Positions 15,220-36,669 of a stretch of DNA of 64,000 nucleotides are shown here, in pieces (position 1 is the stretch's first letter; each line of letters starts with the position of its first letter). A model generated the notes under the pieces. That model was not told where the DNA came from. It worked only from the letters and a program-made list of their open reading frames with translations, and made no database searches. The stretch comes from Bugula neritina (Eukaryota; Animalia; Bryozoa), in assembly GCA_964035545.1 (NCBI GenBank), contig OZ037770.1, forward strand, positions 4,062,662-4,126,661. Reading direction: 5' to 3'. A program made the position numbers and the translations under genes.

Positions 15220-15369
15220 TTAAGGGTTGTTCTTTCTATTAAACCCATCGAAGCCAGGAAAAAGGTAAAGTCTTTTACCATAAGGAAGAGTATTCCAGAT
15301 TACAATCAAACTTCCGTTTCTCTCTGAATCTTCATCTGCATAGAGTTTCTTCACTAGTTTAGTCTGTAC
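15220..15369 (-). CDS. Last coding exon, caspase p10 C-terminus
   Basis: ctacag|[33 protein letters not shown]; TL..K.LYLFPG is the caspase C-terminal strand. Confidence 0.85.
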   Translation of the reverse strand, partial: VQTKLVKKLYADEDSERNGSLIVIWNTLPYGKRLYLFPGFDGFNRKNNP

Positions 15370-18300
15370 CTGTAGAGTAAGTAATGACTAGTAAGATTGT
15401 TTATCAATTCACTATTATAGCTGAGACAAGACGTAAAACTAAAAATGTTATTAAAACTAAAGTAGATATTTTTTTTCAGAGGACAAAAGGATTCAAACAT
15501 AGAAATGAATAGAATGATATGATGAGAAATAATATTTTGATTTCTTAAATAAAAGTTGAAATAGCAAAAAAAATTTTGATTTTTAAATATGCCTGCTGGA
15601 AGATGGTGTAGAGATCACGGTGACAGGCATGTTTGTAGATTGAAGATACTAGGGCTCTAATCATAGGAGATCCATACTTAAGATGTCTTTTTGATGCTAA
15701 AATAAAAGTATATGTTGCAGCTCAAAGCATATGGTGTAGACAGAGCAAGCTTAAAATTGTGTTGAGTTTTTTTTCTGTTTTTAGCATTAGCACGCAATAT
15801 GGTTAGTACACGGAAAAGCTTACATAACATAGTCAAATTAACTTTAGGAAACAGGCAACAAACTTTTACATTGACAAAAAACTGTAGCTGCACACTACTA
15901 ATAAATAACTATCTCTTGTTATACTTACAGCAGACGTTACTCTTTAGAACAAGAAGATCATCTATATCTCGTAAAGTTCTACACTCTTCTATTCTAGGTT
16001 CTGGTGGTGAGACAGGTCTGATGGGTCTTATTACACTGGGTGTTTCAGGATATACAATATCATCATTAGCTTCAGAATGTGTAGAAGAGACAGCTTCAGT
16101 TTCTTCTTCTTGAGCTGCTGCAAGACTTGATCTGTCTGGACTCACCTCAATGTCTGCTGTAAGACAAACATTGCAAATATCTTAACTTTGTGAGCTAAAC
16201 AATCTCGAGACACCTAGTTGCTCAAGCATCAAAACTGTGAATCAAGTTAAAGTGTATATTGATTAGATGACTGGTATCTGACAGGAAGTCTTCACTAGTT
16301 TAACCAATGAACTAAAAGTTCCAGTTTTTACTACAAAACAACTACCTCCACTGCTGGCTTCTAGTATGACAACTTTAGGTTTTCTCTTCATTCCATCGAA
16401 ATACAAAGGAGTAAGTAAATCATGAAGTTCAGTGAGGTTGACCTTCCTAAGGTCAGTTCCATAGATGCAGTTATCTTCCCCACCATGAGTCATGACAACC
16501 AGCATATGACATCCCAAGTCTTTGTGTGTTTCTTTTTTCACCTCAGTCTTCACTGTAGACAGCATTTCCTACAAATTTGAAAATATGTATATAAGCAATG
16601 ATACAAATTCACTTTATTTTAAGTTGGTAAATGACTGCTATTATAGATTTATGCAATGCAAACAAAAAGTTGTCTCATCTACCTATCAAAAGACCAAACA
16701 GTGAACCAAAATCAACAAGCCCCCGAAATTTTAATGCAGCTTTAGAAAAATTCTAAAAACAATAAGAAAAACATAATTTAGTGAATGTAAAAGACAAATT
16801 TTATTTTGTTAAAACATTTTACAGTCTTCAAAAATATTTGATAAAAGAACAAAAAGACATTATATATAAAAATCTACTTTCACCATAATAACATACCTCT
16901 GCTGTCAGGTCTGTCTGTGTCTCAACATCAAATTTGAGAGATTTCAACATGACAGACATGTTCTCAACATCAGCATCTGAACCTTCCCTGCATAAGTCTG
17001 GTCTTTCAACAAAGTTCTTGTTGTTTATTATCAGAGCTTTTCCTCTCTCTCTAGTCATACTGAACACCTGGATACAAGTTTATTTAGAATATCACATACA
17101 GTAGTGACACACATGAGCCAAAGTCAAGAGTATAACAAAGATAGTGGCAAGCTTTTAAAATAAATAGTAATGGTGTGGTGGATTTGCATAATACAATAAT
17201 GTAAGAATTATTTTCCCTCTATTTGGGCAATACTAATAGTAATGGTGTGGTGGATTTGCACAATACAATAATGTAAAAATTTGGGGAATACTAAAGGATA
17301 CATTCATATGGGAAAGGTCACGGCAGATCATCCAATGAGGAGGACTTGAAGGCGAGCTCTTGGCAAGTGAGAGTTAGGTTGTTGTGAGCGAGGGCTCGTA
17401 TTGAATGGACGCATTGTATGGCTATTGTACTAATGTAGTTTAGAGTGATGTTTCGTATTGTGTTTAATTTGAATAATAAAAGCTAATATCCGGCTACTAC
17501 CACGAGTGATTGATTAACTAGAAGTGAATACTAACTGCACACAATAAGACCCACGCACTATAATTGCAAAATTATAACAATAGGTAATTTAGATCTCAAG
17601 ATGCCATATATGATGGTTCCAATTTCTAGGTCTGCCAAACAGCAGTAAAACACTCTCTTAATTGCAAAATCAATTTTTATTTTTACGTTAAGTTTTAAGT
17701 TTGTTTTTTTTAGGTAATGTGAACTAATCAAACTCTTGTTTAAGACACCAGTTGTCATTTTTTCCAACAAAACATGTAAGTAGTCAATGTAAGTATGCTG
17801 GTTATTTTTACAAAAGTCATTCAAGATATTATTGAAGTTACAAAATACGAGTTATTACACTGCATGATTCTACGTTATTGAAAATAGCTTATACTTAACG
17901 TTATGTTTTTACAAACCAAGTATGTATTGGAAGGCTGTAGAATTAAATAAAGACAATTTATGGCTATAGTATAATTTGTTTGCATATAACACTTTACTGG
18001 AACTAAAATAGACCATAGTTTTTTTATGTAAACAAAATTTTTAAAACCGAACCATCTGCAAAACATTCACTTAGCTTACAGATACAATTGATTGCAATAG
18101 AAAATTATAGTAAATTCAACTTCAAGCTTAAAGGTCACAAAAGAAATCATGCTATAAAGTGTTTGCCCCACTAGGATTACTCTATGGCCGTAGGAGTTAC
18201 TGGGAAATCCTAATCCTTCATTCCAAGCAATTCTTTTGGCCTCGATTTACAGCTCCTTCAGTCTGCAGCTTCTCTTAGCCTTTGACATCTCTAGAAGTAC

Positions 18301-36300: not shown

Positions 36301-36669
36301 GTAAAATCTTTGAATTTATGCTGCTTCGGTTTTAATAAAGATCTTTTTAAATAATGTTGACATATATTAAACATTATATAAATATATTAAAACATTTTAA
36401 AATAAGTTGAATTTAAAGCGGCCAAAAATCCGCTGGATTATTATTTCATATCCATGCATGCACAAAAAAGGTACAAATAGCAACATCAAGTTAAAAATTT
36501 CTATATCTGACCTTGCATACTTCGTACCCTATGAGTCACACAGCCATGAATGCTAAGTATTGTCTTAATACAAATAGTAACAACCAGTAGATAACTTTGG
36601 TTGAAAGCAAAAATTGTAACTTGGCTTTTCATCAAAAATTTATCAAAACAACTCACCATCTGTTGCCAT
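15220..36669 (-). CDS. LRR-ROC-COR (ROCO, MFHAS1-like layout) protein with C-terminal pseudo-caspase domain, ~1762 aa, 24 coding exons
   Basis: Exons 36657-36669, 35741-35972, 14x138-bp LRR exons (27019-35002), 19354-21359, 19025-19111, 18681-18823, 16897-17067, 16346-16568, 15929-16156, 15593-15696, 15220-15369 splice with consistent phases to 5289 nt (1763 codons including stop). Confidence 0.85.
15593..15696 (-). CDS. Caspase p10 exon (GC donor)
   Basis: ttttag|[34 protein letters not shown]|gcatat; matches the SxR...GS..I..L p10 pattern. Confidence 0.75.
15929..16156 (-). CDS. Caspase inter-subunit linker and start of p10
   Basis: ttacag|ADIEVSPD...[13 protein letters not shown]|gtaagt, phase 1-1. 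Confidence 0.8.
16346..16568 (-). CDS. Caspase p20 exon: catalytic His present, QACxG motif degenerate
   Basis: [18 protein letters not shown]...[15 protein letters not shown]; tttgtag acceptor, gtagtt donor. Confidence 0.9.
16897..17067 (-). CDS. Caspase p20 N-terminal exon
   Basis: [19 protein letters not shown]...[11 protein letters not shown]...LKFDV...DLTAE; phase 0-0. Confidence 0.9.
18681..18823 (-). CDS. Acidic linker exon
   Basis: ctgtag|[19 protein letters not shown]...NTDK|gtgaat, phase 1-0. Confidence 0.75.
19025..19111 (-). CDS. Post-COR helical exon
   Basis: gctcag|[28 protein letters not shown]|gtaaa, phase 1-1. Confidence 0.75.
19354..21359 (-). CDS. Large exon: terminal LRRs, ROC GTPase and COR domain
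   Basis: P-loop [10 protein letters not shown]3 DMGGQEVY, G4 FTHKD; COR signatures [13 protein letters not shown] and YFIIPQF; [13 protein letters not shown]-cap typical of ROCO proteins. Confidence 0.93.
23885..25218 (+). mobile_element. Gmr1-like Gypsy 3' fragment with LTR 24694-25218
   Basis: Integrase C-terminus ([29 protein letters not shown]) precedes RNase H end ([20 protein letters not shown]), PPT, LTR TGTCAC..GTGACA. Confidence 0.8.
25225..25610 (+). mobile_element. RTE-clade LINE 3' fragment
   Basis: Degenerate RR..LQWY...[17 protein letters not shown]...DHRIR* C-terminal pattern of RTE ORFs. Confidence 0.65.
27019..27156 (-). CDS. LRR exon 14 (DIGVNP / NMRSC)
   Basis: 138 bp, AG/GT, phase 2-2. 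Confidence 0.9.
27619..27756 (-). CDS. LRR exon 13 (NIRWNP / NMWNC)
   Basis: 138 bp, AG/GT, phase 2-2; not in ORF track. Confidence 0.9.
28236..28373 (-). CDS. LRR exon 12 (DIQMNP / DMGNCT)
   Basis: 138 bp, AG/GT, phase 2-2. Confidence 0.9.
28834..28971 (-). CDS. LRR exon 11 (NIGGTS / NIMGC)
   Basis: 138 bp, AG/GT, phase 2-2. Confidence 0.9.
29432..29569 (-). CDS. LRR exon 10 (NIGSIP / NMSSC)
   Basis: 138 bp, tttatag/gtttct, phase 2-2; not in ORF track. Confidence 0.88.
30062..30199 (-). CDS. LRR exon 9 (GIAYNP / QMGGC)
   Basis: 138 bp, AG/GT, phase 2-2. Confidence 0.9.
30656..30793 (-). CDS. LRR exon 8 (DIQMNP / DMGNC)
   Basis: 138 bp, AG/GT, phase 2-2. Confidence 0.9.
31254..31391 (-). 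CDS. LRR exon 7 (DIQMNP / DMGNC)
   Basis: 138 bp, AG/GT, phase 2-2. Confidence 0.9.
31855..31992 (-). CDS. LRR exon 6, chimeric (NIGSIP / NIMGC)
   Basis: 138 bp, tttatag/gtttgt, phase 2-2; not in ORF track. Confidence 0.9.
32485..32622 (-). CDS. LRR exon 5 (GIAYNP / QMGGC)
   Basis: 138 bp, AG/GT, phase 2-2. Confidence 0.9.
33071..33208 (-). CDS. LRR exon 4 (DIQMNP / DMGNC)
   Basis: 138 bp, AG/GT, phase 2-2. Confidence 0.9.
33669..33806 (-). CDS. LRR exon 3 (DIQMNP / DMGNC)
   Basis: 138 bp, AG/GT, phase 2-2. Confidence 0.9.
34270..34407 (-). CDS. LRR exon 2 (NIGGTS / NIMGC)
   Basis: 138 bp, AG/GT, phase 2-2. Confidence 0.9.
34865..35002 (-). CDS. LRR exon 1 ([45 protein letters not shown])
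   Basis: 138 bp, ttacag/gtttgt, phase 2-2. Confidence 0.9.
35002..35073. other. Perfect 25-bp-arm hairpin over the splice acceptor of LRR exon 1, plus a 16-bp palindrome
   Basis: 35002-35026 is the exact reverse complement of 35031-35055 (loop TGCT); AGACTACATGTAGTCT at 35058-35073. Confidence 0.95.
35741..35972 (-). CDS. N-terminal cap exon of the ROCO-caspase gene
   Basis: gttacag|(E)[10 protein letters not shown]...[13 protein letters not shown]...RASLD|gtgagt; phase 1-2 fits both neighbours. Confidence 0.8.
36054..36181. repeat. (TA)n microsatellite
   Basis: Direct inspection. Confidence 0.98.

Follow-up and report, generated by a model that had tools for sequence, protein, structure and literature searches.

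Structure of the locus

We describe a gene on the minus strand of a 64,000-nt stretch of the genome of the bryozoan Bugula neritina (contig OZ037770.1, positions 4,062,662 to 4,126,661; hereafter the window), which encodes a predicted ROCO protein with an array of leucine-rich repeats (LRRs) ahead of its Roc and COR domains and a caspase fold behind them. As rebuilt from splice signals, the gene runs from 36669 to 15220 in 24 exons that sum to 5289 nt (1762 amino acids and a stop), with no internal stop in the frame, and agrees in this with the initial annotation, which had joined 24 exons in phase into a 1762-residue protein with about 31 LRRs. All introns end in AG, and 22 of the 23 donors are GT, the exception being a weak, non-canonical GC donor (GCATAT) after exon 23. 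From its N-terminus the protein comprises about 31 LRRs, then Roc and COR, and finally an acidic linker followed by the p20/p10 of a caspase (Table 1). Most of the LRRs are encoded by 14 exons of 138 nt (exons 3-16, two LRRs each, phase 2-2, spaced by about 600 nt), while three more share the 2006-nt exon 17 with Roc and COR; exons 18-19 supply a helix and the acidic linker, and exons 20-24 the caspase. A chance reading frame or false splicing is ruled out by the open 5289-nt frame and by exon borders that are kept in paralogues and RefSeq models. No usable family was found in the Atlas for the N-terminal exon (exon 2).

Table 1 Features of the Roco-caspase gene, in window coordinates
Feature	Coordinates	Strand	Remarks
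Candidate extra upstream coding exon	37110..37140	-	ATG at 37140, phase-1 GT donor; AG at 36674; would add 12 aa; from sequence only
Exon 1	36657..36669	-	ATG, good context
Exon 2, N-terminal cap	35741..35972	-	W(F/Y)RH(S/T)G motif common to paralogues
Degenerate LRR exon remnant inside intron 2	35553..35587	-	83% over 35 nt, E 7e-5
Exon 3, two-LRR cassette, 138 nt	34865..35002	-	
Exon 4, LRR cassette	34270..34407	-	identical to exon 13
Exon 5, LRR cassette	33669..33806	-	
Exon 6, LRR cassette	33071..33208	-	identical to exons 9 and 10
Exon 7, LRR cassette	32485..32622	-	
Exon 8, chimeric LRR cassette	31855..31992	-	5' half = exon 12; 3' half = exons 4, 13
Exon 9, LRR cassette	31254..31391	-	
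Exon 10, LRR cassette	30656..30793	-	
Exon 11, LRR cassette	30062..30199	-	
Exon 12, LRR cassette	29432..29569	-	
Exon 13, LRR cassette	28834..28971	-	
Exon 14, LRR cassette	28236..28373	-	
Exon 15, LRR cassette	27619..27756	-	
Exon 16, LRR cassette	27019..27156	-	next intron, 5659 nt, holds transposon debris
Exon 17, three LRRs + Roc + COR-A + COR-B	19354..21359	-	P-loop aa 830, DMGG 884, THKD 953
Exon 18, post-COR helix	19025..19111	-	intron 17 absent from RNA-like contigs
Exon 19, acidic linker	18681..18823	-	
Exon 20, caspase p20 part 1	16897..17067	-	Peptidase_C14, E 6e-10
Exon 21, caspase p20 part 2	16346..16568	-	His1556 retained (THG); EASSG for QACxG
Ser1600 codon AGC at catalytic Cys position	16353..16355	-	TGC in closest paralogue
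Exon 22, acidic/proline-rich intersubunit linker + p10 start	15929..16156	-	
Exon 23, p10	15593..15696	-	followed by weak GC donor GCATAT; GT in paralogues
Exon 24, p10 end, LYLFPG strand, stop	15220..15369	-	
Recent four-unit block duplication	29505..34342	-	2415 vs 2423 nt, 13 mismatches, one gap; junction within exon 8

A ROCO protein

In per-exon scans, Roc scores 34.2 bits against a Pfam cut-off of 27 (E 3e-8), and COR-A and COR-B give weak matches below the cut-off. The G1, G3 and G4 motifs of Roc are present at residues 830, 884 and 953 and are conserved in 23 homologues. An AlphaFold model of exon 17 (predicted local distance difference test, pLDDT, 86.5) resembles LRRK1, LRRK2 and the LRR-Roc-COR protein of C. 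tepidum (Foldseek E 7e-25 to 2e-20), and also matches an isolated COR (3dpt). By motif and predicted fold, with COR placed directly after a Roc that carries its G motifs, the window protein is a ROCO protein, and the intact GTPase and COR of the initial annotation are upheld, the latter through predicted structure. No NACHT or NB-ARC ATPase was matched by Pfam on any exon scanned, the nucleotide-binding domain being Roc; the protein is not an NLR.

Diversification of the LRR cassettes

The variability that had been attributed to the LRR array is concentrated on its concave face. Twenty-five of 41 extra amino-acid states fall on the 12 predicted concave positions of 45 (permutation p 0.009), and the proportions of nonsynonymous and synonymous differences (pN/pS) are 0.287/0.174 at concave positions as opposed to 0.066/0.136 elsewhere (Fisher p 0.005). 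This pattern suggests positive selection there, but the excess over neutrality falls short of significance (p 0.20). The cassettes have also been recombined, since the chimeric exon 8 marks the junction of a four-unit duplication whose blocks differ by 13 mismatches in 2.4 kb. As read from these sequences, LRR cassettes turn over by tandem duplication and germline unequal crossover, a process that makes new LRR pairs, although a haplotype mis-join may be an alternative source of the block duplication. Because the LRR exons are symmetric, in-frame exon skipping would also be permitted.

Evidence for one chain from LRRs to caspase

RNA-like contigs were aligned at 90% likeness, over a stretch that excludes the exon 16-17 joint. 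In two contigs from run X7, which carries the label of metagenomic RNA-Seq, a gap bounded by GT and AG at precisely 19111-19354 corresponds to intron 17, and a contig from run X9 joins the end of exon 19 to the start of a paralogous exon 20; given their placement at 90% likeness, these joints speak for the family and not for the window copy. Predicted proteins agree with them: around 13 Watersipora subatra RefSeq models (e.g. XP_067935483, XP_067935178, XP_067932893) have Roc-COR and caspase in one chain, several with LRRs and nearly all with His-Gly and QACxG, and COR is likewise joined to a caspase in two B. neritina GenBank models that bear the label CASP8.

It is conceivable that the locus is mainly expressed as an LRR-Roc-COR protein with little or no caspase, in the manner of MFHAS1, or that the caspase exons form a separate transcript. 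If exon 17 is left unspliced, its frame reaches a stop at 19325; among the Watersipora models, some finish with COR or with the linker; and the 1.6-kb intron 19 and the weak donor of exon 23 permit shorter forms. However, we consider such a product improbable, as five other loci keep the donor of exon 17, the RNA-like contigs lack intron 17, and the frame calls for no separate start in exon 20. Termination at 19325 is rejected at the family level because of the RNA-like joints, the conserved donor and the single-chain Watersipora and Bugula models, and the initial annotation's single chain, as opposed to a transcript ending there beside a separate caspase gene, therefore survives for the family.

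An expanded family in Bugula and its relatives in other animals

The closest relatives of the window gene, at 44-92% identity, lie on JGI Bugula metagenome contigs. Roc-COR exons in the Bugula metagenome assemblies number 30 distinct sequences at 90% and 21 at 80%, and the paralogue count proposed as a follow-up in the initial annotation comes, in these metagenomes, to at least 30 distinct exons below 90% identity; every locus read with enough flank has downstream caspase exons in the same order. On a separate 147-kb contig, which is not assigned to Bugula (locus L016, ENA ERZ25069837), an intronless gene (10001-15043) encodes 1680 residues with Roc and an animal-type caspase (QACRG), and adjoins a Mutator transposase. 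Two Watersipora models (P0061, P0071) begin with an MG-x-x-S-like sequence, which may be a myristoylation signal that directs these proteins to membranes; the window protein has no such start.

Beyond bryozoans, a profile of Watersipora Roc-COR-caspase searched against 1.84 billion representatives also returned the Branchiostoma floridae protein C3XQ16 (LRR-Roc-COR-caspase, QACRG). In amphioxus (Branchiostoma), at least 12 protein clusters hold LRR, Roc, COR and caspase, and close relatives of these carry Death, OTU, GT4, trypsin or FIIND after COR instead of the caspase (entries P0246, P0252, P0257, P0285, P0299 and P0235). A chain of Bcl-2, Roc, COR and caspase with QACQG is predicted in the annelid Owenia (CAH1786849.1) and the brachiopod Lingula (XP_013407220.1); our literature search found no paper on these two proteins. 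The Atlas returned only generic ROCO or MFHAS1 clusters for one Watersipora member. An architecture that is unprecedented or confined to bryozoans is ruled out by the amphioxus, Owenia, Lingula and bacterial examples. The initial annotation knew of no characterised animal protein with this layout, and our literature search likewise found no paper on animal Roc-COR-caspase proteins, though earlier mention is possible in the amphioxus immunity literature; the layout itself, however, recurs in Watersipora, Bugula and amphioxus models and is predicted in bacteria (PMC8195603).

Bryozoan sequences form a strongly supported group apart from amphioxus in both the Roc-COR tree and the caspase tree. 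Approximately unbiased (AU) tests of shared against several fusion origins gave p 0.34 and 0.14, and a shared origin is neither established nor rejected; an earlier rejection reflects only one CARD-caspase nested among the bryozoan sequences. When the Roc-COR tree is rooted on seven bacterial rows, the bryozoan rows fall with those of animals, on a long branch and with thin sampling, and their clade is separate from MFHAS1-labelled invertebrate rows, vertebrate MFHAS1 being outside the tree. The nearest free caspases carry CARD, one of them, from Watersipora, sitting within the bryozoan group, which is consistent with an initiator-type module.

The caspase end of the window copy

Exons 20 and 21 both exceed the Pfam cut-off for Peptidase_C14, the p10 of family members can be aligned with exons 23 and 24, and the family profile and model find their best solved matches in CED-3 and caspase-9, -3 and -8 (the 948-aa family model is of low confidence, pLDDT 51, and was used for the caspase fold only). 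The full p20 and p10 first annotated are retained as a fold but not as a catalytic site: His1556 is kept (THG), yet the nucleophile motif reads EASSG instead of QACxG, and Ser1600 falls on the nucleophile in alignment to solved caspases. The cysteine is kept in 10 of 10 paralogous loci with a complete exon 21, and at this codon the closest paralogue (89% in Roc-COR) reads TGC, in contrast to AGC in the window. With its catalytic Cys replaced by Ser, the window copy cannot be a conventional protease, and to judge from its residues it is protease-dead and not an active caspase. Furthermore, the exon-23 donor is GT in all eight paralogous loci read, and retention of intron 23 would end the protein before its final helix and strand.

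Errors of sequence or assembly (or the state of one allele) could in principle have produced both the Ser codon and the block duplication, in which case the gene would encode an active caspase with fewer LRRs. AGC and TGC are one base apart, and the duplicated blocks differ by only 0.5%, within the allelic range. We nevertheless hold this to be very improbable, since the blocks are not identical and since no single error would explain an exon-23 donor of which four bases in six depart from those of the closest paralogue.

Selection along the branch of the window copy provides a further line of evidence, with a ratio of nonsynonymous to synonymous rates (omega) of about 0.30 in Roc-COR and 0.33 in the caspase exons (p 0.004). 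Purifying selection thus appears to persist in this lineage on both parts, which speaks against simple decay. An alternative hypothesis is that the family works as we propose below but that the window copy is in the early stages of decay within a birth-and-death cluster, its Cys loss and GC donor both being recent, functionless lesions. This would account for two caspase-end lesions that are unseen in the sampled paralogues, as well as for the truncation expected from a retained intron 23; it fits poorly with a 5.3-kb frame that is still open, an LRR array that is still duplicating and the low omega of the caspase exons, and we regard it as unlikely, though worth serious attention.

The history of exon 21 may differ from that of its neighbours. 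Compared with the closest paralogue (L007:4998-5207), exon 21 (16346-16568) has a synonymous divergence (dS) of 0.61, whereas neighbouring exons have 0.12-0.26, and the introns that flank it do not align with that paralogue; because of these two features, an exchange of the catalytic exon between paralogues is suggested. When exon 21 was compared with metagenomes, a single weak match of 33% identity emerged; it lies in a 1.2-Mb contig and was set aside. Both Arg positions of the S1 pocket appear to be kept by motif alignment, and the Gln of QAC is Glu in the window copy. Bugula paralogues read at exons 21 and 23 (L003, L005, L007, L012, L001, L008, L013, L014) keep the Cys and have E or H for the preceding Gln, and some lack the p10 Arg, a variation in Gln and p10 Arg hinting at altered substrate specificity within the family.

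Other elements in the window

A Gypsy-type long terminal repeat (LTR) retrotransposon at 49985-54484 has LTRs of 232 nt that are identical to each other and a gag-pol frame (50261-54211) that is open over 1316 aa, and is a very recent insertion; an LTR end similar to that of this element is found in paralogous locus L005. An older LTR element (9961-14144), with 307-nt repeats that are 95% alike and broken frames, lies about 1 kb downstream of the gene's stop. Transposon fragments, some of them integrase-like, lie in intron 16 (21360-27018, 5.7 kb), together with a pair of short inverted repeats (21886-22008 / 26682-26804). A 38-nt minisatellite occupies 62340-62975 (16.7 copies, 96% matches).

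A possible sensor, switch and executor in one chain

The best explanation of these observations is that the window gene belongs to a family of cytosolic receptors, expanded in bryozoans, each of which combines a variable LRR array, Roc-COR and an initiator-type caspase in a single chain. Initiator caspases activate on dimerisation. Judging from the architecture of the family, its LRRs would bind an intracellular invader or damage ligand, and binding would shift the nucleotide-dependent monomer-dimer cycle of Roc-COR; the dimer state would pair two fused caspase domains, leading to their activation and to cell death, and one chain would do what NLR, adaptor and caspase do in three. A functional analogy with NLRs and inflammasomes is plausible at the level of the family. 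COR mediates Roco dimers (PMC4104024), and bacterial Roco forms dimers when it holds GDP or no nucleotide but is a monomer with GTP (PMC5714945). Consequently, it is not safe to assume that GTP drives the dimer and the dimer activates the caspase, and either the GDP or the GTP state may be the active one.

For the window copy itself, we tentatively favour, with somewhat less than even confidence, the role of a sensor or decoy that is dead as a protease and acts in pairs with active paralogues. Like cFLIP-L with caspase-8, it would use COR and its caspase fold to pair with such a paralogue, which it would either activate or damp.

Several points weigh against these interpretations. The coupling of switch to caspase is an analogy; the concave pN/pS ratio exceeds one, but its excess over neutrality is not significant (p 0.20); among the RNA-like contigs none spans the whole transcript, and none is attributable to the window copy; the purifying signal belongs to the branch as a whole, and could be older than the loss of the Cys; and the weak GC donor points to a caspase end in decay.

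A family of ligand-gated caspases could alternatively serve a non-microbial role, such as self/non-self contact between colonies or the programmed breakdown of polypides. Bryozoan colonies fuse and recycle polypides, and variable LRRs together with family expansion fit allorecognition equally well. However, neither a signal peptide nor a transmembrane segment is evident at the N-terminus by sequence inspection (no predictor was run), and for this reason contact sensing would be indirect; moreover, the effector swapping with GT4, OTU and FIIND in amphioxus resembles that of conflict systems. We therefore think a non-microbial role rather improbable. In support of a defensive family, the amphioxus swapping of post-COR effectors fits the pattern predicted for counter-invader proteins (PMC8195603).

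If the family works as we envisage, it would represent a class of immune or cell-death receptors in animals that fits none of the NLR, TLR and death-receptor schemes and is concealed by the database labels 'MFHAS1 homolog' and 'CASP8'. It would also offer a direct read-out for the LRRK2-type question of which nucleotide state and oligomer of Roc-COR is active, because the fused caspase reports dimerisation by cleavage; and as active and dead copies both occur naturally, models of paired receptors or of decoys can be put to the test. A more ambitious and, in our estimation, doubtful proposal is that bryozoans use dozens of Roco-caspase receptors as a main intracellular recognition system, with cassette-swapped LRRs and dead sensors paired with active paralogues through COR, in a sensor/executor network whose switch is a Roco GTPase and not a STAND ATPase.

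Comparison with known systems

cFLIP-L and other pseudo-caspases retain a caspase fold without the catalytic Cys and occur beside active relatives. Unlike cFLIP-L, the window protein has no DEDs, possesses LRR-Roc-COR and keeps the catalytic His, and any heterodimer of the same kind is proposed by analogy. With NLR inflammasome and apoptosome sensors the protein has in common, by functional analogy, an LRR sensor, a P-loop NTPase switch and a caspase output; those systems employ a STAND ATPase and recruit the caspase by CARD, PYD or DED, whereas the bryozoan protein employs a Roc GTPase with COR and has its caspase fused. Human MFHAS1/MASL1, LRRK1/2 and DAPK1 share the LRR-Roc-COR fold, but are single-copy and without a caspase, LRRK and DAPK carrying kinases. 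Although RefSeq labels the bryozoan proteins 'MFHAS1 homolog', the window protein does not appear from its sequence to be an MFHAS1 orthologue, given that it has a caspase and a clade separate from MFHAS1-labelled invertebrates.

Brown-algal ROCO genes, which have shuffled LRR exons and a variable surface and are proposed immune receptors, resemble the bryozoan gene in their phase-2 LRR exon cassettes and exon shuffling, but encode one LRR per 72-bp exon where the bryozoan gene encodes two per 138-bp exon (PMC11378527). The word 'caspase' is absent from the text of that paper, which describes a minor group with a trypsin-like peptidase and without exon shuffling (PMC11378527).

Parallels are also found in bacteria and amphioxus. 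Bacterial LRR-AP-GTPase(Roc)-COR proteins, with at least 24 C-terminal effectors including caspase, are predicted counter-invader systems (Kaur et al. 2021, PMC8195603), and are like the bryozoan family in domain order, fast-evolving LRRs and several paralogues per genome; the window protein and its family likewise unite LRR, Roc, COR and an effector at the C-terminus in a single chain, and have LRRs that evolve rapidly and several paralogues. The bacterial systems are, however, prokaryotic and predicted only, whereas the bryozoan gene is spliced, its caspase is of the animal p20/p10 type, and its Roc-COR, on a long branch in a thinly sampled tree, groups with animal sequences and not with the sampled bacterial ones. 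The amphioxus MFHAS1-like models (e.g. UniProt C3XQ16), known from database models only, have a domain order identical to that of the bryozoan protein and an intact caspase (QACRG), yet fall in separate clades in both trees, and their relatives swap effectors whereas the bryozoan loci read carry the caspase. The bryozoan family thus follows the known LRR-Roc-COR-effector plan with an animal caspase as its effector, is expanded in bryozoans and has a parallel in amphioxus.

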